Of a DNA stretch of 45,704 bases, positions 6,801-43,800 are shown piece by piece. Where the stretch lies: contig NC_068991.1 in the NCBI RefSeq assembly GCF_001194135.2, forward strand, positions 23,127,740 to 23,173,443. The letters run 5' to 3'. The notes beneath the pieces are model-generated. The model ran no database searches and had not been told where the DNA came from. It saw only the letters and a program-made list of their open reading frames with translations. Made by a program: the position numbers and the translations under genes. Position 1 is the first letter of the stretch, and every line of letters starts with the position of its first letter. This stretch comes from Octopus bimaculoides (Eukaryota).

Positions 6801-8837
6801 GCCGACAATAGTGGAGCCGTGGTCGTGTGACGCGCAGACCTCTACAAGGCTGAAGCTCTCCACCAACTTCAAGACACCTCCTTCTTTTGCCCTCTGCCCT
6901 CCAACCCCACACCTAGCTTCCNNNNNNNNNNNNNNNNNNNNNNNNNNNNNNNNNNNNNNNNNNNNNNNNNNNNNNNNNNNNNNNNNNNNNNNNNNNNNNN
7001 NNNNNNNNNNNNNNNNNNNNNNNNNNNNNNNNNNNNNNNNNNNNNNNNNNNNNNNNNNNNNNNNNNNNNNNNNNNNNNNNNNNNNNNNNNNNNNNNNNNN
7101 NNNNNNNNNNNNNNNNNNNNNNNNNNNNNNNNNNNNNNNNNNNNNNNNNNNNNNNNNNNNNNNNNNNNNNNNNNNNNNNNNNNNNNNNNNGTGGCTTCTC
7201 TCCCCTCACACATCCACGACACTAACCATGCTTTTCGTCTTTTCAACTCTTTCTCCTTCCCTCCTGGTCTCTCTAAACTTCTCTCACTCTTGATATCAAG
7301 AGTCTATATACAGTGATCCCACACAACGAAGGACTTCTTGCTCTCAAACACTTCCTAGACCTTCGACCCAACCTTCAACTGCTTCTTGTTTGCGAGGGAG
7401 TTTTACCAACATGTCTCGGGAGTAGCTATCAGAACAAGAATGGGCTCCAACTATGTGAATCTGTTTGTTCGCTACGTTGAGGCCCAAATATTTTCAAGGT
7501 TCACTGGTCTCACTCCAGAACTATATGGTTGTTATATTGATGACTTTATCGGCATGACCTTGCTCTCCCACGAGCAACTTTTGTCCAACCCCTCGAATTC
7601 TCCTGCACCATTCCAACACTTTCATCACCTTTCTCGACATTTCAGCCAACATGCACAACTCCGCTCTCACTACCTCCCCCCACCCTACCCACACCAAGCT
7701 CTCCATTCCCTACTCCCAATTCCTCCGTCTGTGCAGGTTCTGCAGTGACAACCATGACTTTGAGTCTCAGCTCATGGCTTGCCGCTTTATTCTTCGTGGA
7801 TATCTCCTCATCACTATCCACACCGCCCTCACCAGAGCACATTCTGTGGACTGTGCCTCTGCTCTCTCCTCACACCCACTCCGCCGTTGCCCGTCTCGTG
7901 TTTACCCTCTCCAGCGCATCATTCTCCAAGCCTTCCAGTGACTCCAGTTCAACCCCTCCACTTTGAACATCTTCCCCAACCTTCTCACCTTCAAACGAGT
8001 CCACAACCTACGGGACCTCCTGGTCCACAGTTTCTTCCCTAATGTCACCTCCCAACCTGGCTTGTTCCCCTGCTCCCACCCATGCTGCCGCACTTGCCCC
8101 TACCTCTCCAACACCACCATCTTCACAGGTACCCATCATCGTCCTTATCATGTCATTCCTTTACCTGCACTTCTAGCAACATCATTTACTGCATCACCTG
8201 CTCTTTCTGTCCTTCTCTGTACATCCGTCAAACAGGACGCCACTTGGCTGAATGGTTCACAGAGCACCTCTGAGACATTAGGCTCAGCAATGACGCCCCA
8301 GTCTGGTGCCATTTTCACTCTACTGGTCATTCATTACAACACCTGTCTGTTCAGATTGTTTTTGCACAGGGGCCATCCGGACTCTTGCATTCACCATGAA
8401 CAGGAGTTAATCTTCACTCCTATCCACCTCTCCTCTCTTGCCCTGACACCTACTTTCTTCACTCTTACCCACCTTCTCCCATCATTGATACCCCCTCCAT
8501 CAACCCACACCCACTCGCCACACCATCATCCACACACGCATGCATCCACATGTCAGTCACCAGCCCCTATCTACATGCACACGCGCACCTTCAATTTGGG
8601 ATCACCAGTACTTTATCTCCCCTTCTCCCTAGCTCTCCTGTCTAACCACCTTTGTCCAACCAGTTGCCATGATTGACTGTTAACTCCACAAGTTTTTTTT
8701 TATTCTCTTTCTGTTTATTTCCTTGTGTTCCTTTTTGTTGAAGAGCGTAGGCTCAAAACATAAAAGATTTTCACTTTCTTGAGTGTCAAACTAATACACC
8801 TGCTTGTTGTTTATACACTTGTTTTTCGGTAAATTTC

Positions 8838-19539: not shown

Positions 19540-19612
19540 TTACTCCATTTTGGATATTTCAAACTTTGTTGTCATGATTTCTTCATCAGAATCAATTAGG
19601 CTAGGCAGCGCT
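19540..19612 (-). CDS. TMEM87A: TMEM87 terminal coding exon ([24 protein letters not shown])
   Basis: CACTAAC branch point, polypyrimidine tract and CAG acceptor; conserved C-terminus; TAA at 19542-19540. Confidence 0.95.
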
Positions 19613-22600
19613 CTGAAAGAAGAACATAAGACATGTTAGTGCAAATACTCACTAGTAGTAGTAGTAGTAGTCCTTTCTACTAATGGCACATCATTTAGTG
19701 TCTGCTTTCTATGCTGGCATGAGTTAGACAATTTGACTGGAACTGGTAAGCCAGAGAGCTGCACCAAGCTCCAGTCTGATTTAGTATAGCTTCTATAGCT
19801 GATGCTCTTCCTAACACCAACCACTAGTCTTAATTACTTGTGTAAATTTATTACACTCCAAGAGTGTAATGGGTGCTTTTCATATGCCACTGGTACAGGT
19901 GCTTTTATGTGCCATCAGCACGGATACCAGTTACATGACACTGACATCAGCCATGACTACAATTTCACTTGGCTTCATGAGTCATCTCAAGCATGGTATA
20001 TTACCAAAGGTCTCAGTCACTTGTCATCGCCTCTATGAGGCCCAACATTCAAAGATCATACTTCACCACCTCGTCCCATGTCTTCCTGGGTCTACCTCTT
20101 CCTCTGGTTCCCTCCACAGTTAGAGATCAGCACTTCTTTGCTCAGTTGTCCTCACCCATATGCATCACCAGTGCAGTTGTCTCTCTTGCACACCACACCT
20201 GATGCCTCTTATGCCCAACTTTTCTCTCAAGACACTCACACTCTGTTGTACATGCACACTGACATTGCACGTCCAGCGAAGCATACTAGCTTCGTTTCTT
20301 TCAAGCCTACACATGTCCTCAGCAGTCACAGCCCGTGTTTCACTGCTGAGTAACATAGCTATTTGTACACAGGCATCATACAATCTGCCTTTCACTCTGA
20401 AGAAGAAGCCTTAAGTTACCAACATAGGTAGGAGCTCTCTGATCTTTGCCCAACCTATTCTTATTCTAGCAGCTATGCTCTTGGAGCATCCACCTCTGCT
20501 CTGAGAGCATAGCTGCCAGAATAAGAATATCTTGAAATTTGGGTGTGAAGGGGACCAGTCACTTACATCAATCCCAGTGCTCAACTGGTATTTATTGACC
20601 CCAAAAGGATGAAAAGGTAAGTTGACCTCAACAAAATTTGAACTCAGAATGTAAAGACGGATGACATGATGCCAAGTATTTTTGTCCAGCATGCTAACAA
20701 TTCTGCTAAGTTGCTGCCTTAATAATCCTTTCTACTATAGTCACAAGGTTTGAAATTTTGGGGGATGGGGTAAGTCAGTCACATCGACCCCAGTACTTGA
20801 CTGGTATTTAATTTATTGATCCCTGAGAGGATGAAAGGCAAAGTCAATCTCGATGGCATTTGAACTCAGAACATAAAGAATGACAAAATGCTGCTAAGCA
20901 TTTTGCCCAGTGTGCTAGCGATTCTGCCAGATTCTGCCACCTTTACTGTCTTAATAATGATAACAAACAATCCTTTCTCCTGAAGGCACAAGGCCTGAAA
21001 TTTTGGGGGAGGAGAGTAGTCAATTACATCGACCCCAGTGTTTCACTGGTACTTATTTTATCCACCCTGAAAGGATGAAAGGCAAAGTTGACCTCAGTTT
21101 AATTTGAACTCCGAACATAAAGACAGATGAAATGCTGGTAATCATTTTGCCTGGCGTGCTAATGATTCTGCCAGATAACTGCCTAAATAATGATAACAAT
21201 AATAATACAAGCGGTCGAAAATTTTGGCACAGAGCCAGTAGTTTTTTGGGGGAGGGGCAGGCAGGTCAATAACATTGATCCCAGTGCTCAACTGGTACTT
21301 ATTTTATTAGTCCTGAAAGGATGAAAAGTAAAGTCAAACCCAGTGAAATTTGAACTCAGAACATAAAGACAGACAAAATGCCGCTAAGCATTTTGCCTGG
21401 CATTCTAACAATTCTGCAAGCTTGCCACTTAAATAATAATGATGATGATGATTTCTATAATAGGCACAATACCATGAATTTGCTATCGTACTTTAACTTC
21501 TCAACACCTGGTATAAAGCTATCTTGCTCTCTACTACAACTTCACTCAGTTGAGGGAGGGAGAGATCCTTTTTTGTCTTGTGAGTTGCTTGGCAACCTCA
21601 CCAGAGCCAGTATTACAAAAAAAAGCACCCAGTAAAGTGTTTGGCATTAGAAAGGGCATCCAGCCATAGAAACCATGCCAAAACAGACACTGGAGCTTGA
21701 TGCAGCCCTTCAGCTTGCTGGATTCTGCCAAACTACCCAGCCTGTGCCAGCATGGAAGACAAATGTTAAATGATAATGGCGAGGGAGAGGAGATGGCGGC
21801 TAATTCCATGCAAAATATGTAGCATGGTAAAATAACAATTAATGTGTGCTTCATTAGTTTCCAGTACTGAGTTCGAATATCATAAGTTATGGGCACAAAG
21901 CAGGCAACAGAGAAGTCCCTCCAATATATCCTTCCATACCTTTGCCATGAAGATTTAATGGATTCTTAGTATAAACAGTGTGTGTGTTTGTATGTGTATA
22001 TACATCCATTTCTATAAAGGGACATAGATAACGGTTTTGTTTGAGACATAAATGAGAGTCAAGTCAAGAAGTATTTCCTTTTTGATGTGTGAAACTTCAA
22101 ACTCTGTAGTGTGCAACATCTGTGCAGACATGGCTATGTGTTTAAAAAGTTCCCTTTACAATAAATGGTTCTTGATCAATCCCACTGGGTAGAACCTTGG
22201 GTAAGTGTTTTGTCATAACTGCTTCAATCCGAAACTTGCTGACGAAATTGGTCGGTAGACTTAAACTGTTATCTGGTTTGAACACCACCACATGACTGCT
22301 GGACGATTTTAGCAGAGTCCACTCTGTTAAATATCCAAAGCATGAAGAGCATTCTACAATCTAACAAAACTATGGAGAAGCAAAGGTATAAGCCGCAAAA
22401 TGAAACTGAAGCTGTTCAAGACATTGGTCCAATCAGTATTACACTATGGATGTGAAACTGGAAAGTGACAAAAATGGAAGGAAAAACAATGGACAGCTTC
22501 CAAGTCGTATGCTTAAGGAAAATACTTGACATCAGCAAGATCAGTGATGAAATCAGATGCAGAGGCTGGAACTGGATCGGACACGTCCTCAGACAAGATT

Positions 22601-25600
22601 GCTAACTAACTAACTATTGAAAGCATTCAAAGTAAGTTTTCAGCCTGAGAATAACTCCTCTCTTCCTCCATCAGCTTTAGAAGTCCTGCAAAAGGTTAAA
22701 GGTGCTAATATTCCTCTTCTACTAAGCCATAATATACTTAAAAAAGAAAAATTCAGAAAATTATATACTTACTTGTCAGCCACTGAAGTAGGGATGTTAT
22801 CTTCAACCCATTTAAGATCATCTTCCTGAAAGAGGATAATACATTACGGATTACAGGTGATAATTGTTTCTAAAGGAAGTTTGATAATAATCAGATGGCA
22901 AAACAAGGCACATCTCAGATCAAGTGCAGTAACTTTTCTCTTTTAACAATTTTTCTGTGATATGAAATTGAACATTACAAACACAGCTTACCAAAGCAAA
23001 CCAATAGTACCAATAAAACCATTAATAGCTGTGATTTCCACAGCATACAGTTCTAGATTTATAATGAAAAAAACTTGACTGATGTCACTCATGTCTCTCC
23101 AAAAAGCTTTGAAGATAAGGCACAAGTGAGGTAAACTGGACTGATTACAACTACCAACCAAAATGTGTTTCAGACTTGATCAGCTATTCCTACTTCTTCA
23201 CTCAACCTACCAGAAATAGTAGACAAATATCCTTCAAATCACATTCTATCTTAGCAGTGAAGGAAGAATACATTGGATAATATAGTTCCAGATACACTGT
23301 ATCAGAAAAAAGTGGTAAGATGATCAAAGCTGGAATGATTTTGATCACAGGCCGCTGGCTTAGATCAGAGCTGATCTGGGTGGCCTAAACGTTTTTCTTG
23401 GAGTTGTTCATGAAGAACATTAACCACACTGAGCTCATTAGTCTTAAAGGACATGCAAAGGACACAGGCAAATTTACTTTCCTCCAGAAAAAAAAAAACC
23501 TTACAACTTACATAAAAAGGTTAACCTCAATAAAGAAATTCTAACTGAACATACTGACTGCAATGAAACTTTTCCACACTTGGTTCCTAGTTATAAAGGT
23601 ACACTGTCCAGTAATCTCTTAACTACACATTTGTCAGATATCAGAGTTAAGTTCATTATTACAATAACAATTTTAATAACTACTAATATTTCATATTGCA
23701 GAAAAAATGATGATCACCAAAGAAACAACAAATATTTAATTTATTACATTCATTGACCAGTTAGTGTTAAAACAGGAATGTAAGAACAACATACCACCAG
23801 CACCAATGATTCCTGTAAGAAACTGAGTTCAGACATGGTTGTGTAATTAAGAAGTTTGTTTCACAACCATATAGCTCCAGGTTTGCTTTCACTACACAGC
23901 ACCTTGGGAAAGTGCCTTATATCATAGTCTTAAGTTGACCAAAACCTAAGATTCTAAAATACAACACATAATATGCTGTATTTTAGTGTGTGAATAGTTG
24001 CTTGAAAATATGTGGCATGCTATACAAGTTTGTCTGGCCATTATATTTCAAGAGGCATGAAATTAATAACTTGAATTTAAATCTTGTGTACATTAAATGT
24101 TATATGTCTTTCACTGGATGGAGAACTTTCTTTTGTTGATCCTACCAACAATGGAACAGTACATTATATATATGAGAATGTGTGTGCATGTGTGTAATTT
24201 TTGCAAATGTATATAGTTGAAAGAATAACCATTAATGAGAAATCAAAATGAAAAAATACAATTATGCTTCATGAAGTCCCTTGAGGTACTTCTTAATTTC
24301 TTACAGACACACCTTTGTCACTCTTGTGGGGATGCAATGAACCATTAACTGGATCTTTAGAAACCTGTAACTAATGACAATGTAGTTCATTAGTTGTAAT
24401 ATAAAATATATGATAATAAATGTCTAAATGCAACCCCTGAAAGAGTATGGAACATTTAAAACTAGAAAAGCACTCTGAGAGTGCAGACCTCTACAAAGCA
24501 GCTCATTTTAAGATAGATACACGAGTAAAATTATTAATAGAGAAACGAAAATAAACTTTGGAAACAGCAATGCCACCATAGGTTATGTGGAAATAATGAA
24601 CGTGTTTTCGAGGGAGATAATCAAAGAACGTAACCTCGTAATACTTCATGTAAAGTAAATATAACAAATGAAAAATCCTTCAAGAATCCATAAAAATTTC
24701 CGGATCACTACCAAAATTTCATCATCTATTCCTTGTGTCATTACCAACTTTTCCTGCAAGTTTCATCAAATACTGTTCACAACATTTTGAGTTATTTTGC
24801 ACATAGACGGACAAACCAAAGCTGAAGAATACATAACTGCCTTCCTTGGTGGAGGTAAATATTAGAGAAACTTACTGCTTTATTTTTGGAATCTTTCTGT
24901 TTTGGAGATCCATTCGAGAGAGGTTTAGCTCCTCTCATCTTCATACCATCTGTAAGGGACAGAACTGAGAATTAGAGGCTAACAGAAAAAAGTAAGATAA
25001 ATTAAGTATCAACTGAAACTTGAAAAGCAGACTTCTGGCTATTTTAACAAGTAATGCTTATCTAATCACAGCTTAATCAAAGAAAGCTCTCAAAGGTTAA
25101 GGGACATACCCTTTCTTCTTTGACAAATGAAGAACAAAAACTAAATAGAGAAGAATAAAAGCAACAACAAAAATAAATCAGTTGATACTGACCAAAAGCA
25201 TCGTTCATAACAGTATCATCATCATCTTCATCTTCAGCATCGAGCAATGGGGAAAAGGCATATCTAGAATATACAAAACAATTTCATATGTTTTTTAATC
25301 AAGACTCTAAAGGAATTTACCCAAATATACCATATACATGTACTCTTTAAGTTTAATTATAAGTTCCTACCTAAAACTGTGATGTATTTTATGCCATCTA
25401 ACACATGTAGAGTCAAAGCATTTAGTCACTAAGGTTGAGGTTAATAAAATCATATTGTACAAGACATAAAATATTTAGATTTCCACACTTTGCTCCATAT
25501 ACTAATAAAAGCAATAGCATTAGAGATATAGTGAGAAAGAAGTCACAACATATCTAAAAATAAGCATCTATGTTACTGGTCTACTTAGTTACAGATGACA

Positions 25601-28600
25601 GGGCCTACAATTCAATAGCAATAGCCAAAATAAACAAAGCTGGAATAATGATGGAAAATACAAACCTTTGGTTATTTGCAGAGGGTCTCCACAAAATCAT
25701 AATAACCAAGAGCAGCACAGAAAACAGCAGATGCCAAAAGGCATCATCAACCCACAATTCTCGCCAATCCTTTAAAGCAAATAAAAAACAAACATCATTA
25801 CTTACAATCATAACAAGTCTCTTTTGCAGATTGCTAGGATGTCCCTTTGCAACCATCACTGATATTAGTTTATTTACATACAGACATGTACGAGTGAGTA
25901 TTTGTGTGGTTATGTGTATCTGTGGCTGCTTAAACTTTGGTGATAACATTGTAGTGGGGAGGTGCAATGGCCCAGTGGTTAGGGCAGCGGACTCGCAGTC
26001 ATAGGATTGCGGTTTCGATTCCCAGACCGGGCATTGCAAGTGTTTATTGAGCGAAAACACCTAAAGCTCCACGAGGCTCCGGCAGGGGATGGTGGTGAAC
26101 CTTGCTGTACTCTTCCACCACAACTTTCTCTCACTCTTACTTCCTGTTTCTGTTGTGCCTGTAATTCAAAGGGTCAGCCTTGTCACACTGTGTCATGCTG
26201 AATATCCCCGAGAACTACGTTAAGGGTACACGCGTGTGTGGAGTGCTCAGCCACTTGCATGTTAATTTCACGAGCAGGCTGTTCCATTGATCGGATCAAC
26301 TGGAACCCTAGACGTCGTAAGCGACGGAGTGCCAACAATAACATTGTAGTAGAAACTGTACAGGAAATAATATCTACCTTAAATGCAAAAACATAGTGTG
26401 TGACAAGTAACAAAATTTCCATATCTTGTAAACAATATTTCTTGTGACAATGATGATGAAATTAATGTTTGGACGAGACTCGGGGAAGCTGCAGCAGTTT
26501 TCTAATGGAAGTGAAATTATACCTCTACATGTTCACTGTGGTACCACTAGCTATCTATGCTCATGAGAAAGTTCAACTAGCTTTCATAACAAACTTACTG
26601 TCTTTCATAGGCACAATATATGCCCAATATTAAGTATTGAGCATAGTATGTACTAAGTATTTAGTACATAATATCTGTATTTGCTGCAGATACTATGTTA
26701 TAAGTGAAGTTATAAAAAGAGGCACAATGAATAAGGAACAATACAATATTTACAGTAGAAATTAAATGTGCAGATCTGTAAATCAGTAAAAGGTGATGTC
26801 TTTCCTTCAATCACAAGGAGATATACATTTCTGATAGATCTTTTTTCAGTTATTTTGGCCAACAGAGAAGCTTCTATACAGCTGCTAACTTGCTAGAAAT
26901 AGTAGCAAAAACTTCCTCAAATCACACTCAAACATCTTTAAAGATGGAAGACAAACTGGACAATGTAGTCCTAACCATAAATTTGAGATGGTAACAGCTA
27001 GACTGACTTGACCATGCCTGCCTGACCAGAACTACCTAGGGTTAAACAACATCAGCCCTGACCAACATGTGAATATCCACATGATTACACAAACTACTAG
27101 AAATAACAGTCAATTCCTTCTAGAATCACACTTTATGAACTTACATTTTATGTAAAACAGTTAGCCCAACTGAAAATGAACTGGCTGATCACAGCTAGAA
27201 TGCCTTTGATTCTAAATCTGCTCAATGAAGGCTGACCTGAATAAACAATAATGAGGGCTGACCTTAATAAGCAACAACAAAAACAACCCTGGATAAAGAT
27301 AATGAAGGTGTTAATTGAAAGATACTTACTGTAAGGCAGAACTTGAGCTTGTGCTGGGATATTGACCAAGCCATGTAAGATATGGACGCTGCAACAAATA
27401 GAGTGAAATATTAGTTTCAAGTTGATGTCACAACTTACATAAGGCAAAAATTGTATGGCACTTCCTAACATGGGATAACTGTATCATCTAAGATGGATAT
27501 AACTGTATTGAGTGCAAACATAATTCAATGCTGAGAATGTTGACTTCATAATCATGAGGTCTCAGTTTCAATCCAATTGTGCAGCACATTCAGCAAGAAT
27601 CTTACTATATCCCTAAGTTAACTCTTCTCTCTGTCTTTTTCTCCTTTCTATTCCATTTATATTTAAATTAGTAACAGTATTTTGATTTCCATTTTGCATG
27701 TTTTTCTTTTGAAGAAATAGGTAACCCATCACTCCTAAATTAATGCATTGTATGTTAATTATGTAATTACATAAATGTTGTTGTTTTACTCTACTGAAAT
27801 AGCTGAAGTGGTTTCATTAATTGAACAACTTGAATCATTCTCAAAGCTGTCATGTGATCCCCCTATTGATTGTACAGTATTATCAGAAATGAATATAAAT
27901 CTATGGTGTCTCTTTTCCTCAAGATGGAGGCATATATGATGTCTCACATCATAGACATTAACCATTTCACTGTCGAGAGCAGACATATCCATTCCAAAAA
28001 TTCATTACTATTAACTGTAGAAAGTAGTTTTATATATTAATCTATCTTTAGTTGAGGAATGTCATATTTCAAACTGGTTTCTTTTGAGATATGTAAAGTT
28101 TATTAAGGCAATATGATTTGCAGAAAATCCCAATTCTACTTTTTGGTAGATATTTAACATCATTACTGGAATAACCATGAAATCTAATTTAACAGTTAAA
28201 GGGTTAAAATATGGTGTCCTTCAGTAGAGATGTTAATCATATAGAGTTCACCAATATAGTCAAAACTATATGATGTCCTCAATATAAATATATCAGTATA
28301 GTATCTTCTAATATAAATATAGCTATTGGTCTGTCAATATGGATCATAAATACAGAGAGTTCTTTGATATGATAATAGGTGTAATGAACCTCAATAGTGA
28401 CACATATCTACAATGGTGTCAAATATGATGTAAACATATGTTACATCATACAGAGGTTGCCTTAATGACATGAATGAAAAGTAAAGAGATAAGGACAAAC
28501 CCTTGACAGACAACCACTTGTAGATTATAGCACAATAAAAATTACTGAAACAAACAGGTTTAATAGAAATAAAACAGATGAATAAGAAACTACCAACTTA

Positions 28601-30147
28601 TGGATTAGGGGAAAATTGCTTGTGATAGGCAAAGGTCCTATCATTTTTCTTTAAGTCCTGAGTATTTAGGAGCTCTGGTAACATGGTATTAAGAGTTAAT
28701 TAGATGAGTCATCAATGTATCTCTAGATATAACATTATAAGATGATCTGATAATTTATCTCAAATGGTTTTACTAGGTTAAGGTATAATATAAAGTCTTC
28801 TACTGAGAAATATATCAAGGTTTGATCTCACTATCCAACAACGAGCAGATAGTGATTCAAACTACTATTTTGTTTTATAGAGAAGATTCATGTCAAATGT
28901 GTAATACAACAAAAAACAAATTTAAACTGTGACTGTGAGTTATTGTGATTTCTGAAAGAACCAACTTTAACAACTCATGGTCCTTCTCCTGAACAATTCA
29001 CTCAAAGTTTTCTATAATCACACAATTCCTTCAGTTTGCTTGAAAAAACTTGAAAACTCTGCTGTGAACAAGACTATGACGGTGGCATTAACCCTTTTGA
29101 TACCAACCCGGATGAAATTGCCTCTAGCTCAAAAGTACAAATGTCTTGTTTTCAAAAGTTCTGAATTAAAATCTTCCACCAAAGCTTAATCACAATTTAT
29201 GTTCCTAACACTAGCTTAATGATATGTAAGTTATTTTACTAAATTGAAAGAAACACAGAGCATCTCAACAGAAATATGGTAACAAGAGGGTTAAAGAGCA
29301 GACTGATATTTTTACTTACCCAAAACTGCAAATATAAGTGTGTTGGTGAAATGTCGATAGAGTGAAAGCTTCACTATGTTTCTTCGTAGTCGCAGTGTTC
29401 TGGTGGTTTGTACAAGGCCAGAGAAAATGTGTTGACATTAAGAAAAAATATTTTGTCTTTTTAGTGTCCAGTAGTTTAATATATGTTATACTCGGAAAGG
29501 GAACATAGCATCATATTGCAAAGATGAAGACAAGTTAGTAACATATCAATGGGTTTTGAAGTTAGCAAGTTGCCAACATATCAATACTTTAAGTTAGCAA
29601 TACATGGAGAAGAACACTGCATATAAGTAACAGGATGAGTAGAGTGGGTAAGTTACTAGTGTAATCAGTTGTAATTAGCACTATATAATGATGATGGTAG
29701 TTTCTCATAGTCTGAGAAAGACAGTTCTGCAATTTCTTGCTGAACAACCTGCATGGATTATTTGTTTATAGTGATCAAATGTATGTGCTGTACACAAGCT
29801 CACTCCCTCCATCAAATCGACATTGCCTGAACAAGATGCACGGTGTACCACATGTCAGATGTCAAAGTGATCACAGACCAATGTGAGATGAAGTGTTTTG
29901 CTCAAGAACACAACACACCACATGATCCAGGAATTGAAACCACAATCTCAGTCATGAGTGCAACACTCAAGATAATATTATTTACATTCAACAGATATTT
30001 GTCCTCATCTTGTTTGCTGTTAACACAATGTTTCAGCTGATATACCTATACACTACGCCAAATGCCCATGGGCATATGGCGTAGTGGTTAAGAGCGCGGG
30101 CTACTAACCCCAAGATTCAGAGTTCGATTCCAAGCAGAGACCTGAAC

Positions 30148-30184
<37 letters not shown>

Positions 30185-30855
30185 TCGAAAAATACCTTAG
30201 GAATGAGAACCCAGGTTCGAAATTTCTCTAAGACACCTGAAGAAGGCTGGAGAGTATATCAACCAAAACGTATTAACAACAAGCAAGATTAGGACAAATA
30301 TCCATCAAATGTAAATAATGCAAATTATGTGCATAATTCCTCATCTCTTAAATATAGAACTGTACTCACAATAACTTTTGCTATCTTAACTTTTGATGGC
30401 AGATACCAGTTTAGCAACATGTTGCATGGCCTAACAAACTAACATCATATTGAGAGTGGAAGAAAATTTACATATGATGGAGGGTAAAGAGTTAGCAACA
30501 AATTAGTTTCATTAGCAATTAGAAGCAGTACATTAAATATAGTTGAGAAGGAAAGTTTAGAGTATACAGGCTGTGAGATCAAGTAGAATAAGTTAGCAAT
30601 ATGCTTCAATCTTATAATATAATTAGCAATATATTTCAATATATCTCAATTTTAAAAAAAATATTTAAAAAACACGTCTAAAAATGAATTTGCTTATGGT
30701 AAAGGATATCCACCAGCAAATAGCAGCATCAACAACAGCTAAAGGAACATTGGCTAACATCAGTTCTTTAGATTGGTCACTCTTGGACTGTGGAAAAAAA
30801 CAAAGAAAAAATAAAAATAAAATCAGACAATTTCTTATTTCCTCAGTGAGTTAAA

Positions 30856-30902
<47 letters not shown>

Positions 30903-33900
30903 CACACACACACACACACATTAATAATAGGCAGAAGTTACAGAGTGACAATGGCCAAATTCGCATTTGATAAGTGCCAATACACAAAACTCTCAGCTTT
31001 TGACTTACTCTCTAACTTCTGCTGATGATATATATACATATGTGTAAAAACATCTCATCACGCAATCAAACCAATGAAAGCCTCTACCTGGTCACTTGAC
31101 ACACTAAAAATAGCAGCCAAAGTATCCCCCTACCTAAATCACACGCCCATTGTACATAATGTCCTAGATTATCTCTAAAAACACGGTTTGCTGAAGGTTG
31201 GAATGTCTTTGATGAAAGGTTTGCTGTATCAGGGTTGATTTGAGGCTAAATAACAACAAAATTATTACTGAGACAGACCAATGACGGAGCCTGTATGTGG
31301 TTGCATGACCTGCTAGAAAAAGTAACCAAACTTCTTTATATACAGAATACAAAAACCTCTATCCTGTGATATACACGTAGAGTCCATTATGTCTGGGAAG
31401 AAAGACGGGATGATCACAGTTGGGACATCTTTGATCATATCTGCTCAATCAGATCCAACTCAGGACTAAGCAACAGGTGACGAAGGGAATAAGATGGGAC
31501 AACGAGAAAGCCTTTACCTGGTGGCCCAAGTTGCTAGAAAGAGCAACTAAATCTTCCTGACAAAAAGAAAAATGAAATTCCCGTCTTCAAGAAACAAAAA
31601 TTCAAATTTATATTACCTTATAATGTTCGCTTAGGAATTCATTACTTCTAGAAAAGAATAAGACAAAATGGCCATGGCTGGAACGCCTTTTCTCACAGAT
31701 CCATTACAATCAGAGCTATCCTGTGGTTAAAACAATTTCTTCACTGAATGATGAAGCAGCTAAAGTTAAAGAAAATGCCGCTAAGCAATTTGCCCGGCAT
31801 GCTAATGATTCTGCCAGCTCACCACCTTATTATTATTATTATTAACAATAACAACAATAGTAGAGGTGGTTTGTCATGGAAGCTTGTAAATTCACAAGGG
31901 ATCTTGGCATTAATCCTGAGTTAGATGAAGAATCTGAAACCACTGCTACTGTACTAGCAAAACAAATCAAGTGGACTGCTAAAAAGAATGGGCAGAAACA
32001 AACTAAAGAGAGGTGGAATCAGAAATCCTTGCATGGACAATATACTCTTTGAAGTCAAAATGCTGATACTGATCAAGCAACAACCCATCAGTGGCTGAAG
32101 AGTTCATGATTGAAAACAGAGACTGAAGACTTTATACTGGAAACACAAGATCAAAGCATGTTTACCAAAAATTACTAGACTAATGTTCTTAAAAATGGTG
32201 CTGACCCAAAATGCAGATTCTGCAACACATTTGATGAAACAATAAACCATCTTATTTCTTTGCCAACACCAAATGAATATAAAAACGGGCCACAATAGGG
32301 TAGGATGGTATTAACATTGGAAAATATAGAAGCACTACAAAATTGACACTTCTACCAACTGGTATGAACACCATCATGAGCCAGTGGTTGAAGGTAAAAA
32401 TGTCACCATCCTCAGGGATTTTTCAGTCAACATTGACATAACAGTCTAGGTTAATCAACTAGACATAATTATAATTATTAAATATAGTGAAGAAAATACT
32501 TGTAGATTGCTAGATGTAAGTATCCCCACTGATAAAACTATATCTGTAAAGAAATTTGACAAGCTTAGTAAATATAAGGATCTAGAAAGTGAAATACAAA
32601 GAATGCAGCACCTTAAAGCAAAAACTATTCCTGTTATTGTAGGTGCTCTCGCTATGATAAAAAAAATGAATATCAGAAACAATTAGACAACATCTCAAGA
32701 GAATCATATTTCAAAGAAATCCAAAAGATTGTGCTGACAAATACCACCTGCATCCTTAGAAAAACCCTAGCAATTTAAATGTTTGTATTGTGTTGTATTA
32801 CATGAATGCATTTCTGAATTGCCCTCTCTACTTTCTATTCCCAAGTTTTCAATTACATTTCAACATCTCTTAAGCTTCACTTACACCCTAGGGTGTTGGG
32901 TGTGTCTTGGCAAGACACATTTAAACTACTACTACTACTACAACATTGACCCTAATACTTATTTAATCAACTTTATCAATGGAAGGCAAAGCAGACCAGA
33001 GTAGGATTTGAATTCAGAATCTATAGAAACTTAACCAAATACCCACAGGATATTTTGTCCAATGTTCTACCATCTACCTGCCATATGAATTTTCTTTCCA
33101 GTTAATCAGTCTTTAAAAGTATTTTGAAGCAAAATAACTTACCTTTAAGGCTCGTAAGCAACTTTCAATAGATGCCAAAATGAAGTATAATATGCCAACA
33201 CAGAGGACTTTGTGAAAGGTGAGTCCAAGTCGGGGTCTATAAGTGTAGAGAAAATGGACAACAATATATGATTCTTAGAAAAGTGAATTATTGGGTAAGA
33301 TAAAGTCCCTTCAATAGAGAATATAGAAAAGGAGTCAAATTTTGACTATACCCTTTATGTACATGATAGGGACAAGAAAAAAGAAATGTGAAACAGAGTG
33401 TGGAATGTATGTACAAAGATAGTATAAGGTTAAATAAAAAAAATGATACTGAAAAAGAAAAAAATGGAGTATATACAGCATTGCATGGTGGTTCTGGGTT
33501 AATAGTCCTGCCATTCCAACAAACAGAGTTGTGGTTAGCTGAACTGAGAAGGTCCAAGATTACTGTCTTAGGAATTGATAGAACAGTTCATATCACTATG
33601 ATATGTCTATAGCCAAGACAATGAACTGACAATGTTGAGTAACTGTTTCTGTATGGTTTAGGTGAGAAATAAATTAACGTTCAACAAGATATTAGGTCAC
33701 CCCAAGTAACTTCTTCGGAATTCATAGTACACAATTTCCAATTATGAAATAAAAGAGGCAAGCATGCGATTCAGAATTCAGTACCAGCAGCACCAAGTAG
33801 AGCTCCTATAGAACTCTGAGTGGTTCTACCATAATTATTTCTACCATAGCCTATCGTTAACTAATACTTAACAAGTGAAAGTGTGTGTGTGTGTGTTTTT

Positions 33901-36900
33901 GTGTGAAAGAGAGAGGTGTCGGGTGAGTGTGTGTCAGTATATCTGTGCAACTAACTCAAAGATATTTACATCATTAAAGGGAGGTGACTCCCTAAAACTA
34001 GGTTAACTCAATTATATAATAAATAGGAAACAATAAAAAATTACTAGAAAAATACTGAGATTGATATAATTGACTAAATGCTTTGAAAGTTGTGTCCCAG
34101 GATAACCAGAATCCCATGACTGAAAACAGTAAAAGAATATTTTGCTCACAGACGTATCAACAAATCTGCAACATTTAAACTGAGTTTAAATCACATCAAT
34201 CTCAACAGTCTTGATGGACTTACAAAGATCATTAACACAACCCTTTCTTCTTCACTCAACCATAAATAAAAGGAAGAAAAAGAGAGAAATTTGATCTCAT
34301 ACTTCTAAAGTTAAATGTATGACAACCTTACCCACTCAAACATTTAATCTTTCATTCAATCTTTAATTAGTATTAAAAAACAGGAAAAATATGAAAAGCT
34401 GAAAAAAAACAAAAATTGTATGATACTTACTTGACTATACCAAAACCGAGACTGACAATGACCACTAACATGCGAGCCAGCATCCGCTTGAAGCATGAAA
34501 CCAACTCAGCAAAAATGACTGCTCCTCGAACTAAAAGAGAAAAACATTGGAAACAATTTCAGGTAAGTTTTAATTTTACTTGACAATATTTAGTTTCATC
34601 CCTATGTTTTGAGTTCCATTCTCCTGGTCAATAAAATAAGTACTGAGAATTGAATGCGATTGATTTGATTGACTCTACAATTCCATGGAAATTAGTGGTA
34701 CTGTACCAATGTCATCTCTTTATTGCACACAACCTCAACTCAAGTAAAAATTTGGTATACCTCCCAATAGCACACTAGATGAACAGAGGAATTCAGAGCT
34801 AACAATCTTTGCAAAAGACTCAGCACAAAGTAAATGACATACAAACTTTGAACTATTCAACAGGTAGGCCAACTACACAATAAGTTGATCAACTAAGACT
34901 TTTGTGATGACAAAAATTACAGAAGTAATCTGTCCAAACAAACTACTTGTATGAATATTTACTTTATTTTGCCCTTTATAAGAACGACAATGTTTGTAAG
35001 GTTAAATGGTGGAACTGCTCACTGTATGGTCAGATAATCAAAATTCTATTACAAGTATTAGGCAGAGCATGTGAGCAAAGTACCCCACAATAGTTAGTTA
35101 TCTTCCAGGTTATTTATCTGATAATGAGTTTCATTATGTCACTGTCAAGTGCATGATATCATAAAAGAATTCATAAGTAAAGCTGCAAAAATGCGGAGAA
35201 AAGCCCTGGTTTTTCCCTCGCAACCAATAAGAAAATTTCTTCTATTTTACTGATGACAACACTAAACTCTACAATGAAATAGAGAAAAAATTCCCTTGTC
35301 AACACCACTATAACTACATCCAATTACAAATGAAAATATTAGTCTGAGCCTCTACTTAGTCACTCAGCCTACAAGAAGTAGCATCCAAATTTCCCTCAAA
35401 TCACATTTTACCACATTAAAAAAGGAGAGACATATTAAGAAATGCAGCCCTAAATACACTATACTTTAAAAAAAAACAAAAAAAACAACAAAACAACTGA
35501 TTATCCTCCGTACCAGTACTGACTCAACACTAAACAACAACATATAACAAAATACAGAATACAAGAAAATACTCACCTGATACCCCAGTGCTACTGATAC
35601 TCTGGTATTCAGCATAGAAAACTGCCTTCTCCAACATTCCTGCATTTTGAAAGAAAGAAAGAAAAAATATTATAACTATTATTGTTATTAGCACCAACAG
35701 TAGAGTAGTGACAGAAGCAGTAGAGTGCTGGACAATATACTATGTGATATCCAATTACATTTTTCCTTTTTTTAATGTCCCGGGTTCAAATCTCACTGGT
35801 ATCAGTTTTGCCATTCATCTTTACATGGTTAATAAAATAATATTAGTCAAATATATGTTGAACCAAAGACATTTTGGTATTTAGTTTCATCCCTCTATGT
35901 TTTGGATTCGAATCTCACTAGAGCTCACTTTACTGTTCATCCTTCTGATATCATTTTAAACACTTATACCTTCCACATAATTCATATGCATATGCTAATA
36001 TTGTTTTGTGGCAAGAGTCATGACACCCGCTGGATGAATACACTTGACTGAACAACTATAAATAGTACTGGTCTGAGTGAGAGACCAGAGAGAGAGAGTA
36101 GGCTTTAATCACAAGAAGTTGTAAGGTGTCGTTTTGGTAGTTTGTTGGAATATCGTTTATTGGATTGTAATGTTATTGTTACCCTGCTTTGTTGATAAGG
36201 GTACACCAGGCATATATGCATCACAACCATATGTGCGCGACATAGTGATCTCATATCAAGATGAACAGTGCATGACCTTGCAGGTGGGGCCCAGTCAGAA
36301 TTTTCTTTAGGTTGAATAGCCCATCCTGCTCAAAAGGTCCCTGAATAAGGGTTGTTTAAGGATATTGAACAAAACACCCATGTTTCCAGAGGTAAATTAT
36401 CCAAACCCCAAAGAATTCCTCTCAACACATGACTATGATGCACCCCCACTACTTCTGCTTGTGATCAGAGATGCATATACTGTCAGCCACTAAGGGACAA
36501 ACAACTGACAACTAAATTTGTGGTATTAAGCAGAATATTTGCTGTGGCCCATCTTTTATACCAAGACAAAACAATATACATAACACTTCCAATCAGTTAA
36601 ATATTATTTATTCCTTGTAACTATAGGTATTCATTCAAAATAGCTCAAATTCTGAATAGGAAGCAGTTATATTTGTAGGTTGGAGAGAAACAAGCAAAAA
36701 AGAAAACTGAATATTTACCTAGTAAGATAACAGCACCAATCCAAAACTGTATACGAAGTAGGTCTCTCCAGTTGCAGGCCAATAGAAGTAACCAAACTAT
36801 GCCATAGAAGATATATAGTAGTCCCATGATGCCAAAGAACTGAAGTGATAGAATGTTAAAACATAAAATGTAATAATATAAAATGATAGTCTCGAAACAC

Positions 36901-37799
36901 ATACAGACATGAAGATACAATCACACTATTTCTAAACCACCTTATAACCAAACAGAGGAGTCAACAACAGAAGACTATGCTGCCACTTGACCTGAAATTG
37001 AAATAGTAGCCAAGTCTCCCTTAAATCAAACCATATTCAAAAATAAAGACAGATTGCAATATGCACCTGAATATACAAAAGACAGGATGGTCACAGCTGA
37101 ACTGTCTTACATTATAGGTCTGCTTGATTAGGGTTGTCTTGGGAAAAAATAACAAGTAAACAAAATACCACATAATGAAAAAGGAGGTATGTACCCAGCA
37201 AAATTCATATACCCAAACACACACAACATATACTGACTCATAAGAAACAAATATTTTATTCCATATTTAGACAAATTAGACCCTTACAATTTCAGTTTAT
37301 ACACAACATATATTACTGACAAAATAAAGCCAGGTAACCTGACTGAACACTGCAACCAGGCCCTTGGATTCCTTGAGTGAAATTCACTCTGCTATAAGCA
37401 TGTAGGTAAATGAACATCACCTCATTGTGAGAGACTGGGTTGAAGATCATATAGACATGGTTTCAACTCCCAGCCCCAGAGATGCATTGTATAGCTGAAA
37501 ATGAGCACTTGCAACAGGTGGCAATGTTGAGAGGGTCAATTGTGTGACAGACTGGTGTACCATTCAGAGGAAAGTATTATACTCTTGGTCACTTATATGC
37601 CCTAACCTAATAAACTCCAGGCACAAGGCAGACCAAAATAGCTAACAAACATTTAGGCCAAGTAATAAGTTGTGCTGGAGAAGACTCATCTAAACCATGA
37701 AAGCATGGGAAAATGGATGTAAAATGATGAGGAGAAATAATTGCCTTCACCTTTTTATTTTAAGTCTCCTCATTTATTGTTTGAAAGATTATTATTATC

Positions 37800-37861
<62 letters not shown>

Positions 37862-40800
37862 CATCATCATCATCATCATTTTATAAAGATTGACGTAATT
37901 CTTCATGAAGGTAAATGGACAATAAGAAGAGCATGATGTGATTTTTAAATGACCATTTATTTAACAGTTTGAGCGATATTTCAACAGATCATTTGTCTTC
38001 TTCAGATTCGAAATCTAACATGAAAACAACTGCAGAAACACAGAAATTCAAAATATAAACAAGGATATTTTGATAGAATGATCAGTTTTCAATTTTCTAA
38101 TTGGCAAAAGGAAAAGAAATAAGGAAAAAAAAAATTAAGAAAAGGAAAAATATTTAGTCAAACAGTTTTGTGTAAATTCACCAATCATTTTATTCATTCC
38201 TACAAGGCATTATATTAGTAATTCACAAATACATTTGTCCTCATGCACTTTGAGGACTGAAAGTGTAGAATTCAGAATATTTTCTGAGAATGTGCACTTC
38301 CAGGTGTTTCTCAAAATTGCAGCCATTTGATGTAAAGTGTTTGGCAAGTTCTGTGGAACTACTGTTATTGTACCTGACATCATACCTGTGCCAATCAAAT
38401 CTTTTGTTTAATTATACAACCAATATAAACCAAGTTGCATTTGGTGCATTCTGCTGCATACACCAAATGAGAATCTTTATATGTTCCACCTTCCATATAA
38501 ATCATAACATTTCTGTTATGATACATGATGGAATTGACTTGACTCATGTTGTTGCACAATGAACAGGGCTTACCTCTCTTGCAGCTGTTTTTCTAAGTGC
38601 AGCATTCAGAAACTCCAATGATAGTTTTCTTGAAGTTAAAGGTAGTGGTTAATATTTCTGTTATATTTTTATTGCGTCTAAAGGCTACAATAGGCAGCTG
38701 AAGGAACATTTGTTTGAAATGAGGATATTTTCTGCAATATACTGGTAACTTTCATGTAACACTTTTGAAATGCAAGTGAAATTTCAGTGCCAGTTAAATA
38801 CTAAAGGAATTCTATAACAAATTTTAATTTGGTTGCTAAAATTATGTGTGGAAGTTTAACTTTCCTTGCTAATTTTAGCTATGTCATTTTCCTTTTACCA
38901 GTTATATAATTGAAAACTGATGATGCCATTCTATCAAAATGTGAATGCAAGATTTCCTCATTAATATTTTGAATTTCTGTTTCTGCGGTTGTTTTCATTT
39001 TACATTTTGAATCTGAAAAAGACAGATGATCTGTTGAAATATCATCCAAACTGTTATGTAAACAATCTATTACAAATCGCATCATGCTCTTCTTATTGTC
39101 TATTATTACTATTATTTTTATTTAAAACAGTTTGATTTGGCCCATGCTGATGAACTAGGCTTCTGTAAGAAACCTATGAAACTTTAAACTGCATGGGGCC
39201 AAGTCAAACTGTTTTAAATAATAATATACGAGGGGTTTTCATTAAAGATTTCCTCTAACCCACTTCCAGTTATTGCAGGAAACAGAACTTATACAGGTAT
39301 AATTATACATGTTTCTACATGTCACATTATAAATTGGCAGCTTTCCATTAGTATTTGTTTGTCTTTTATGGCTGCTAAAGTGGACTAAAATGTTATAATG
39401 GAGGCAGTCGAACGCAGATCAGTGATCAGGTTCTTATACTTGAAAGGTCATACACCAAAACAGACTTTCAATGAGATGAAAGAAGTTTATGGTGATGATG
39501 CACCATCATATGACTGGATCCCGTGCTGGTGGCACGTAAAAAGCACCATTCGAGCATGGTCAATGCCAGTACCACCTGATTGGCTCCCGTGCCAGTGACA
39601 CATAAAAAACACCCACTACACTCTCGGAGTGGTTGGCGTTAGAAAGGGCATCCAGCTGCAGAAACCTTGCCAGATCAAATTGGAGCCTGGTGCAGCCTCC
39701 TGACTAGCCAGTTCTCAGTCAAACCATCCAACCCATGCCAGCATAGAAAGTGGATGTTAAACGATGAAGGAATAAGAAATTATGTCATAGTTTACAGCTT
39801 TTTCTGCTACAAGAAGCAATGCACCCATAGATGAATGCTTGTGTATCATCCTATAGCTTCATCGAAGCTTCAGACATGAAGTACAATGGGGTTATTCAAC
39901 AAGAACAATTTGAAACATTATAAGTTTTAAAAACAACTAAACTTACCAACAGAAGGGGCCACTCATTTGCAGATAAATATCCATGCTTTCCCAACATTCG
40001 AATTGTAACTAGAAATGAAATATACATAGGTCATTATACAGTTGGCTCTGATAAAAACAAAACTTCACAATGGAAATAATCCTAGAAATTCTCTTTGACT
40101 TTCTGAGTTTAACAGCAACAACATTACAGTTTTATGAGAGAAAACTAAATATAAATTACATTAAGAAAAAGATACATAAAAATTTTTTTTAAATAATGAA
40201 AGCCAAATATTCAACAGATGATGTGATGGTGTTAATAATAAGGCCTGAAATTTTGACAGAAGGGCTAGTCAATTACATCAACCTCCATACTCAACCGGTA
40301 TTTATTTTATTAACCCTGAAAGGGTGAAAGGCCAAGTTGACCTTGGAATTTGAACTCAAAACATGAAGAATTAGATGAAATGCTGTTAAGCATTTAGCCC
40401 AATGCGCTAACAATTCTGCCAGCTCACTGCCCTTATGATAATAATAAAAGTAATAATAAAGGTTTCAAATTTTGGCATACAGCCAGCAAATTTAAGAGGA
40501 GTGGTTTAGTTGATTACATCAATCTCAGTATTTGGCTGGTACTTATTTTATCAATCCTCAAAAAGAATGAAAGGCTAAGTCAACCTTAGTGGCATTTGAA
40601 CTCAGTACATGAAAAGAGGGAAGAAATACTGCTATTTTGTCTCCTACATTAATGATCTGCCAACTTGCAGTCTTCATGATAATAAAAATAGTAACTAGTC
40701 TAACTGTTGGGTTACTGGGGAAGTCTGAATTTCCCAGCAATGGAGTTTTGTTTTGTGGGGTTTTTTTTTTTTTTTCTTTTTATATTGCATGCTTTCAATG

Positions 40801-43800
40801 AATGTGACATCGAAATCATGCATAAACGCTGCCTTTCCCCAGAAAAGGAAAGATTTGGCTGCTATTTCTTGCACACCCTGCTACCACATAACAGGTATTT
40901 CAGGTCCATTATCACAAATAGCTCTTACGTGGTAGCAGAGCGTGCTAGAAATAGCAGCCAAATCTTTGGAGGTGGGATACGTTGAATGCCCTCAAAAGAA
41001 ACCTATGGAAAAAAACTATTTCAGACTGAGGTTACAGACGTGTCTTTTTATGAAATATTTACCATATTTTTAAAGTCATTTTCACTTTAAAATATTTTCC
41101 CCATCATAATGTGTCTAATGGAAAGGTTACAGTTTCTTGCCTTTCAGGGTTAAGTTATTTTCAGAGTATTTTCCCATTATGCACCGTTTGGGGTATTTAT
41201 ACTCCAAAACACCAAATATCTCAATAACTACTGGTCTGATTTACATGAAACTTGTTTTATTCCATTCAGAGTATTTTATTCAAAGTATTTTACCATTATG
41301 TGCCAGTTTGGCTGTGTAACATTGCAAGCAAGCAAGACTGAACTTCACTTTTAATGTATCATAGATAATAATAATATCTCTTGAAGCAATTAATATAGTG
41401 GTTAGAGATCTTGAAGAAAGGAATTCATGTAGCTTTACCAAGAACGTTTTTGTATTCTTACTGTCAATACAGAGACTGTGAAAAGCTGAATCAATAGGAA
41501 GACCAATAGTTCATATACTGATATAAACATAATAATCTACCTGTGGCCTAAACACCAAAGTCTCAATTAGTTCAGTGCTCCAAGCTGTAAATAAGCATCA
41601 CAGAGCAGGAAAACTCACTACTATATTTTCAAAATGTTAACATTAACAATATTAAAACTTTAGAAATAATTAAAAAGTGAGAAAGACAAAGAAACATATC
41701 CAACACATACTATCAGCGGTGAAATGCTTATCGGAAGTGATTTCTAAGAAAAAGGCGTATGGTCCGTCATGCCATGTTGATGCCACAAAGGAATGTTTCT
41801 CGTGCTGAAATATAAGTAAAAATATAAAATTATATCACCAGCTTTGTAACAATGCTTATTATTTTGTGAAATTATTGACACATACAGCATTCCTTGGAAG
41901 TACTGCACAACCACAAAGCAGGTTTATACAGCCCTAATAGCAGTGAGTACCAGGATTGGTTTTAAGAGAAAATGCTGGCTTATCACAATTTATTGTCATA
42001 TGAATTGAATCAATATTTTAACTGTTCAAAATTGTTAGTTATGACTCATGAATAAAAGGAAAATTTTAATTAAATTTACATGCTTTTATTTTCACCAGCT
42101 GTCTGGCTTCCATGCCGGGGGCACATAAATAGCACCATTTGAGCGTGATCGTTACCAACGTCGCCTTCCTGGCACTTGTGCCAGTGGCACGTGAAAAGAC
42201 ATCCGAGCGAGTTCGTTGCCAGTACGGCTGGACTGGCTCCTGTGCAGGTGGCACGTAAACGTAAAATACACCATTTTGAGCATGGCCGTTGCCAGTACCG
42301 CCTGACTGGCCTTCGTGCTGGTGGCACGTAAAAGCACCCATTACACTCTCGGAGTGGTTGACATTAGGAAGGGCATCCAGCTGTAGAAACTCTGCCAGAT
42401 CAGATTGGAGCCTGGTGTAGCCATCTGGTTCACCAGTCCTCAGTCAAATCGTCCAACCCATGCTAGCATGGAAAACGGACGTTAAACGATGATGATGATG
42501 AAATTTATTCCTATTTCTTGTAAATGACATGTTTATCCTCATCCATTTGTAAATTTCTAAATTCATCATGAGCCAATGTCTTTTAGGAGGGTATTAGGGA
42601 ATGTTTGATGCTCATGCTGTTGCCAATGAACCTTAGCTGTGTAGCTTGGACAGACCCAAGAACCAACCAGGTCATAGACATGCATTTCTGGCAGTGAACA
42701 TGTGTTTAATAAAAAAGAGGAAAACGAACAAAACATACTAACCTTATCATACCTTACAAATCATAAACTCACAACTTATCTATGAGATAAATATGAAAGT
42801 TTGTCTATTTGTTTTGAAACAACTTTGTTATTTCTTAACAAACTTTTACCAAATTTGGCATGGAAATCTGAAAGAATCCCAGAATAATCCATGAAGAACT
42901 AAAATAATACAAACCCAGTTATGCAGTTTCTTTGGTGTCTTTTTTGTTTTGCTCACAGTTTTTGAAATTTTAAAATTTTAAAACTAAGTGAAAATTTTCA
43001 AATTTGGTATATTGATGTAATTTTTCACACTGAATCTGATTTTCACTTGTTTCAGGAAAAATTTAGAAAAATGTTACAAAGAGCTTAAAGTTTATTTTTA
43101 CCCAATCAGAAAACAATGCTTGGAAACAGGCATTTTGTGTGTAATAGTGTCTATGACAACATGATGATGACAAAACATTATGACTACCGTCTTTCAAGTC
43201 TTAACTCGATACTGTGGTTCACAGATCATCAGATGCTTATAATATTGCAGCATTATTATTTCAAAACTATTTCAAGCAATCTCAAATATTTTGTAAAAGT
43301 AGAATCAAGAATTCCATTGGAATTTAGAACATCAAAACAAATATAATTCCAATTGAGGTCTTTACAAATAGAGAAAGCTAGTCTTAAGAAAGAACATCTT
43401 TTGCTGAAGGGCAAAAGACAGAGGAGTTGTATAACTTTCAATTTGTTGCAAATGGATAGTATATGAATAGGTGAATAAAGAAAAAAAAAAAAAATTTATT
43501 TGGGTTAAATTTCACAAAAAACGAAAAAAACAACAACAAAAACTTACATATTCAGAAAAGAGACAACACTTGATACCATAGTGGTCAAACTCTAAACGTG
43601 TTTGACCCAACATACACATAAATATTAAGATATTTTCTTGTAACACGTAAGCGTGATACAGTCAAAATAAACTTCTGAAAAATCTAAGCTGCACCAAAAT
43701 TTTCATTGGATCAAGTTCACTACTTGCACTACTACTACTACTACTCTGGAAAATGATCTAACCATCATAACTTCATGGTTTTTTTTATATCATATGAACT

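Follow-up and report, generated by a model that had tools for sequence, protein, structure and literature searches.

We found that a gene of the TMEM87/GOST family, lying on the minus strand of the window (the whole 45,704-nt stretch of Octopus bimaculoides DNA analysed here), very probably carries a U12-type AT-AC intron that is orthologous to the catalogued mammalian TMEM87A/B minor intron. From homology and conservation, we infer that the corresponding exon junction, 30710/29428, is used in this species. One TMEM87-family copy was found in the window, which comes from an AT-rich genome, and the exon blocks supporting it are the following:

19543..41798, minus strand: extent of the TMEM87/GOST-family gene as detected from homology-supported exon blocks
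near 41798-41697 and 40009-39950, minus strand: two exon blocks by homology, both weak
36839-36717, 35640-35578, 34531-34431, 33236-33143 and 30787-30710, minus strand: exon blocks of the 5′ part, by homology
29428-29320, 27388-27330, 25769-25665, 24956-24879, 22828-22775 and 19614-19543 (C-terminus), minus strand: exon blocks of the 3′ part, by homology

Joining 30710 to 29428 gives ...AAICWW/IF... (the slash marks the intron position), a 63-residue peptide from two exons that aligns without gaps to human TMEM87A residues 360-412 and matches the TMEM87A chains 8ctj, 8hsi, 8htt and 8kb4 in the PDB (cryo-EM) with E ~1e-19. When a 243-residue model from seven consecutive exons was used as the query, it matched Pfam GOST_TM (PF06814) with 277 bits and an E-value of 1.9e-82, over profile positions 5-246 of 246, and the AT-AC junction leaves this match unbroken. 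These similarities support the assignment of the gene as a TMEM87/GOST-family orthologue. All the other boundaries inspected in this gene are GT-AG.

The intron and its surroundings were delimited as follows:

30710..30787, minus strand: upstream exon, 78 nt, phase 0 to phase 0, encoding 26 residues
29429..30709, minus strand: AT-AC intron, 1281 nt, phase 0, between a Trp and an Ile codon
30701..30709, minus strand: U12-type 5′ splice site ATATCCTTT, which together with three exonic bases reads TGGATATCCTTT
29436..29447, minus strand: branch-site 12-mer TTTTTCTTAATG, the same as in the minor intron of human SACM1L
29429..29430, minus strand: 3′ terminal AC, in the context CAC/ATT at 29431-29426
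29320..29428, minus strand: downstream exon, 109 nt, encoding 36 residues plus one base

The original prediction placed an AT-AC intron between an exon ending in TGC TGG TGG and an exon starting with ATT TTC TCT, and every base of this arrangement matches on the minus strand. The upstream exon finishes with ...GAT GCT GCT ATT TGC TGG TGG, of which 30710 is the last base, and its own acceptor is of the ordinary U2 type (a T-rich tract and CAG at 30790-30788). The downstream exon opens with ATT TTC TCT GGC at 29428, giving the peptide IFSGLVQTT..., which corrects an earlier reading, and is followed by a U2-type GTAAGT donor (29319-29314, minus strand). The intron itself begins with ATATCCTTTACC (30709-30698, minus strand) and ends with TTTTTCTTAATGTCAACAC, the longer stretch at 29448-29429 (minus strand) being TTTTTTCTTAATGTCAACAC. 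The features expected of a U12-type intron are present, namely a /RTATCCTT 5′ splice site directly after the exon, a TCCTTRAY-like branch site near the 3′ splice site (optimum 11-13 nt), where a long pyrimidine tract is not required, and a 3′ terminal YAC, as in the AT-AC subtype. The branch-site core TTCTTAAT lies at 29444-29437 (minus strand) and contains candidate branch adenosines at 29439/29438, 11/10 nt from the intron 3′ end. It is two positions off the TCCTTAAC consensus, both of them C-to-T changes, which presumably would give G-U wobble pairs with the U12 snRNA rather than mismatches. If the established U12 pathway applies here, the U11/U12 di-snRNP would recognise ATATCCTTT, the 5′ splice site, jointly with the branch site TTCTTAAT, U6atac would take the place of U11 at the 5′ splice site, and one adenosine 10-11 nt upstream of the terminal AC would act as the branch point. 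The resulting Trp/Ile exon join would make one of the seven transmembrane helices of the GOST domain continuous.

Scores for the two window signals were taken from the identical 12-mers catalogued in supplementary file 3 of Olthof 2019 (PMC6717393). One minor-intron criterion of that study is an AT-AC 5′ splice-site matrix score above 50 that is at least 10 above the other matrices, and a separate criterion is a branch-site cut-off of 65 (Olthof 2019, PMC6717393). The window 5′ splice-site 12-mer is identical to those of mouse Tmem87a, which scores 91.1, and human TGS1, which scores 92.5, and the branch-site 12-mer is identical to the human SACM1L entry, which scores 76.7 against the cut-off of 65 (Olthof 2019, PMC6717393). 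Since both 12-mers match catalogued minor signals, the intron is a minor intron by published criteria, and the minor-spliceosome signature originally claimed for it is borne out by the full U12-type AT-AC set. SACM1L is an unrelated gene whose 5′ splice site is of the GT subtype (GTATCCTTA) and not AT-AC; its likeness to the window intron is confined to the branch site, and it shows that an intron accepted as minor can have this weaker variant.

In human and mouse, TMEM87A and TMEM87B are already on record as genes with a minor intron (Olthof et al. 2019, PMC6717393; Akinyi and Frilander 2021, PMC8329584), coordinates for both being given in the supplements of the former, and the intron concerned separates exons 11 and 12 (Olthof 2019, PMC6717393). 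Given this prior cataloguing, the window intron would be the orthologue of a known intron. The human orthologue, to which the original prediction had pointed as a check, is TMEM87A, whose minor intron (ENST00000389834, chr15:42228821-42231191; MIDB/Olthof et al. 2019, PMC6717393) is likewise of the AT-AC class, with the exon end TGG before ATATCC (Olthof 2019, PMC6717393). The 5′ splice site of mouse Tmem87a equals that of the window, and the human one, TGGATATCCTTC, differs from it by one base. The genes differ in the branch site, which is TTCCTTGAC in mammals and TTCTTAAT in the window, in intron length (human 2371 nt, mouse 2855 nt, window 1281 nt) and in number, mammals having two paralogues where a single copy was found within the window.

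In TMEM87B, the orthologous minor intron follows a similarly short exon, of 72 nt in mouse against 78 nt in the window. The mouse Tmem87b minor intron also holds a mutually exclusive exon 11a, and competition between the spliceosomes leads to tissue-dependent isoforms (Olthof 2019, PMC6717393; Akinyi and Frilander 2021, PMC8329584). The window differs in having no alternative exon copy inside or upstream of the intron, since no duplicate of the 78-nt exon came up in either the minor intron or the one upstream of it, even when searched at relaxed E-values. A second RTATCC was not found inside the minor intron either, where the sole RTATCC is the 5′ splice site itself, and the only other one between the neighbouring exons, at 33053 in the upstream intron, is preceded by stops. 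With neither an exon copy nor a second donor, the mammalian circuit of major/minor spliceosome competition is therefore absent in the window, which has the plain form of the intron.

At CWW/IF, an ATATCC intron also occurs in five other genomes: two known from vertebrate-type contigs, the rest from a close relative, a spider and a third invertebrate. In all of them, a branch-site motif precedes the intron end (AC, AA or AG) by 10-13 nt. A further contig contributed the acceptor side. The introns and their splice signals are:

L001, close relative with exon proteins 94-100% identical (ENA ERZ21867824, closest locus): intron at CWW/IF of 3385 nt; 5′ end ATATCCTTTATA (begins ATATCCTTTA); 3′ end TTTTCCTTAATTGCTTTAC
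L005, more distant invertebrate: 657 nt; 5′ end ATATCCTTTGAA, ATATCCTTTG; 3′ end TTGTCCTTAACTTAGCTTAC, GTCCTTAACTTAGCTTAC
L010, 29132-32013, spider Stegodyphus dumicola: 2882 nt; 5′ end ATATCCTTTAAT, ATATCCTTTA; 3′ end TTTGCCTTAATTTTTAATAA, GCCTTAATTTTTAATAA (AT-AA)
L011, vertebrate-type: 179 nt; 5′ end ATATCCTTTTGT, ATATCCTTTT; 3′ end TTTACCTTGACTGTAATAAAC, TACCTTGACTGTAATAAAC
L007, 125-271, vertebrate-type: 147 nt; 5′ end ATATCCGCTACT, ATATCCGC; 3′ end TTCCTTGACTGTCGGGGGCAG (AT-AG)
L012: acceptor side, the donor lying outside the contig; 3′ end CTCCTTGACAGTTGATTAC

The 5′ splice site ATATCCTTT recurs in L001, L005, L010 and L011, and the branch-site spacing of the window is repeated in L001, L005 and L010. 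The two vertebrate-type introns, L011 and L007, share with TMEM87A the placement at the identical CWW/IF codon boundary. The AA and AG ends of L010 and L007, each combined with an ATATCC donor, represent 3′-terminal subtype drift in a U12-type intron.

The same boundary can be read from proteins. Many homologous ORFs enter the exon from the intron through SLT, LLD or LLN (TCCTTAAC, TCCTTGAC), followed four to five codons later by a Y, H, N or D codon (xAC) directly before IF. A second group of proteins on genomic contigs runs out of the upstream exon as CWW-ISF (ATATCCTTT), and a third is uninterrupted over CWWIF. In the spliced, cDNA-like relatives P0103, P0059 and P0063, CWWIF or CWWVF is contiguous, and the NCBI protein P0053 of Stegodyphus dumicola reads CWWIF.

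The comparison with the close relative L001 separates the splice signals from the rest of the intron. Third codon positions are identical at 34/63 sites, and the two introns (1281 vs 3385 nt) can be aligned over the first ~10 and last ~20 nt only. As only the signals are alignable, the splice signals are under selection, which argues for a working minor spliceosome in this lineage.

The intron is not found everywhere at this position. It has been lost precisely in L006 (204-515), where the fused exons read TGT TGG TGG ATA TTT, and at the DNA level L008/L009 have an AG-ended intron four codons upstream of the site (L008 83-340). Protein evidence from P0149, P0151, P0154 and P0155 suggests an intron one codon upstream, at ..R/WVF. 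These shifted introns could have arisen by U12-to-U2 conversion with sliding or by independent gain. Positional conservation, drift of the 3′-end subtype, and loss or replacement in some lineages are the usual behaviour of U12-type introns.

Counted over the whole window, the donor motif is not rare. The 8-mer ATATCCTT has 5 copies on both strands against 2.65 expected, a number reached by 12 of 100 shuffles, and no enrichment of ATATCCTT/RTATCCTT was found in the whole window. The remaining two minus-strand copies of ATATCCTT (36365 and 38068) lie deep within GT-AG introns of the TMEM87 gene and adjoin no exon end. At one fixed site, ATATCCTTT is expected with p ~1.2e-5 under the window base composition. 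Its placement is not due to chance, as it stands exactly at an exon end set independently by protein homology; that the position is non-random follows from this homology-defined exon end, from the branch motif 10-11 nt from the AC and from conservation in other genomes.

We next consider what retention of the intron would do. Reading through the donor gives 18 residues and then a stop, with 14 intron-encoded codons, so that the truncation of the seven-TM domain after 14 added residues, which the original prediction had put forward, is confirmed by translation:

30665..30667, minus strand: in-frame TAA on retention, reached after 14 codons

With the intron retained, the mRNA would not be productive: it would encode a truncated protein, be degraded by nonsense-mediated decay or stay in the nucleus. 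The premature stop is present in the sequence, and a regulatory use of it might be imagined, in which a genuine U12-type intron would also, by being retained or removed under control, turn TMEM87 expression on and off. The stop inside the seven-helix domain would suit such a switch, a role as molecular switches has been suggested for minor introns, and there is tissue-dependent alternative splicing around this intron in mouse Tmem87a/b. However, no feature at the locus is specific to regulation, an early stop upon retention is the rule for almost any intron, and the mammalian arrangement of mutually exclusive exons 11/11a is missing here. The switch is a generic proposal for minor introns, not supported by anything specific to this locus, and we regard it as unlikely.

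On the sense strand, the minor intron carries six TTGCTAAY motifs, with TTGCTAAA and TTACTAAC, in 1.28 kb, the window total being nine on both strands. The motifs lie at 30491-30629 and 29541-29600 (minus strand), in degenerate repeats of ~30-35 nt that flank the intron centre, and we take them to be similar to U2-type branch points and to sites bound by STAR/SF1-family proteins. By analogy, the cluster might tune U12-intron retention, either through decoy branch sites or as a platform to which proteins bind, in which case TMEM87 output would be adjustable by a route unlike the mammalian exon 11/11a competition; we consider this very doubtful. The TTGCTAAY cluster was not found in the orthologous introns of L001 and L005, and because of this it is probably a decayed lineage-specific minisatellite and not a conserved element.

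Another reading accepts the AT-AC ends and assigns their removal to the major spliceosome, as in a U2-type AT-AC intron. In introns of that kind, the 5′ splice site is ATAAGT-like, of the major type, and a branch site resembling TCCTTAAC is missing. The type of spliceosome is indeed not settled by the terminal dinucleotides alone, which are insufficient for this according to Olthof 2019 (PMC6717393), citing Wu and Krainer 1997 and Dietrich et al. 1997. Here, however, the full minor consensus ATATCCTTT stands at the 5′ splice site, the branch motif lies 10-11 nt from the 3′ end, each of the two 12-mers is identical to a catalogued minor signal, and the ATATCC donor is kept across phyla even where the 3′ end is AA or AG, which is typical of U12-type introns. 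Removal by the major spliceosome is thus highly improbable, and the U12-type assignment is preferred.

It is more improbable still that the window copy is a non-functional pseudogene whose intron signals are relics. The homology-supported exons are all open and in frame and encode a full-length GOST_TM domain, and the per-exon protein identity of 94-100% to the close relative, combined with synonymous sites near saturation, points to purifying selection.

The original prediction had also noted that the nearby GT, joined to the nearest upstream AG, creates an immediate stop, and translation agrees, since the GT inside TGGTGG (30713) joined to that AG (exon start 29456) gives ...AAIC and then a stop at once. 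Further GT, GC and AG dinucleotides lie close by, and we enumerated 15 GT or GC donors, located from -45 to +120 nt around the end of the upstream exon, together with 5 AG acceptors from -150 to +60 nt relative to the downstream one. Among their combinations, 13 keep the frame, and three of these 13 are free of stops; in all three, the AG lies within the conserved exon and lacks a pyrimidine tract, and at least 19 conserved residues are deleted. As CWWIF, which is present in every homologue, is reproduced by the AT-AC join alone, the chance that the true boundaries are other GT-AG sites and that ATATCC and AC are coincidental is next to nothing.

The main value of the U12-type AT-AC intron lies in correct annotation. 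The gene model here must permit the AT-AC junction 30710/29428, or else the TMEM87 protein would be split, truncated or given a wrong peptide. That predictors restricted to GT-AG would mis-annotate the gene, as first suggested, can be seen from proteins deposited for other species, where the truncation or distortion falls precisely at CWW/IF. Faulty models at this boundary are P0048, P0049, P0050, P0072, P0085, P0109 and P0160, from fish, tree shrew, tuatara and periwinkle. The Perca, Nibea and Tupaia (P0050) entries begin at the first Met past the junction, the Lates and Seriola entries read CWWISF..., and a Sphenodon entry is without WWIFIS. The Littorina entry (P0160) begins inside the intron (MAIGIRSSFYFLDCDH/IF...), and its back-translation fits TTCCTTGAC...CAC. 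The Littorina signals were inferred from this protein, and the mammalian splice signals were taken from the supplement of Olthof 2019 (PMC6717393). Judged from these entries, the errors at CWW/IF are a recurrent annotation fault caused by the AT-AC intron. The feature is real but ordinary and expected, and raises no new question. Its evolutionary contribution is a further example of the TMEM87 minor intron at a codon boundary shared by this invertebrate lineage, a spider and vertebrate-type sequences.

Several repeats were observed along the window. Inside the intron, at 29977-30319, there is a foldback/MITE-like element with inverted terminal repeats of ~50-69 nt that are 80-84% complementary. 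Between the repeats lie an (AAT)n microsatellite at 30148-30182 and, at 30051-30086, a near-perfect palindrome of 36 nt. The palindrome looks tRNA-like by eye and was rejected as a tRNA gene, having no ARAGORN or Rfam call; over the whole window, neither ARAGORN nor Rfam (at gathering thresholds) gave a match. Just upstream of the 78-nt exon, at 30856-30920, an (ATCT)11.8 microsatellite is followed by (CA)9, and a long (AAT/ATT)n tract lies at 37.8 kb (37788-37873). A run of N at ~6870-7240 marks an assembly gap, after which, at 7386-8676 on the plus strand, ORFs with a reverse-transcriptase-like YIDD motif lie in sequence that is richer in GC and has a strongly negative GC skew. This region at ~7 kb is probably a retroelement fragment.
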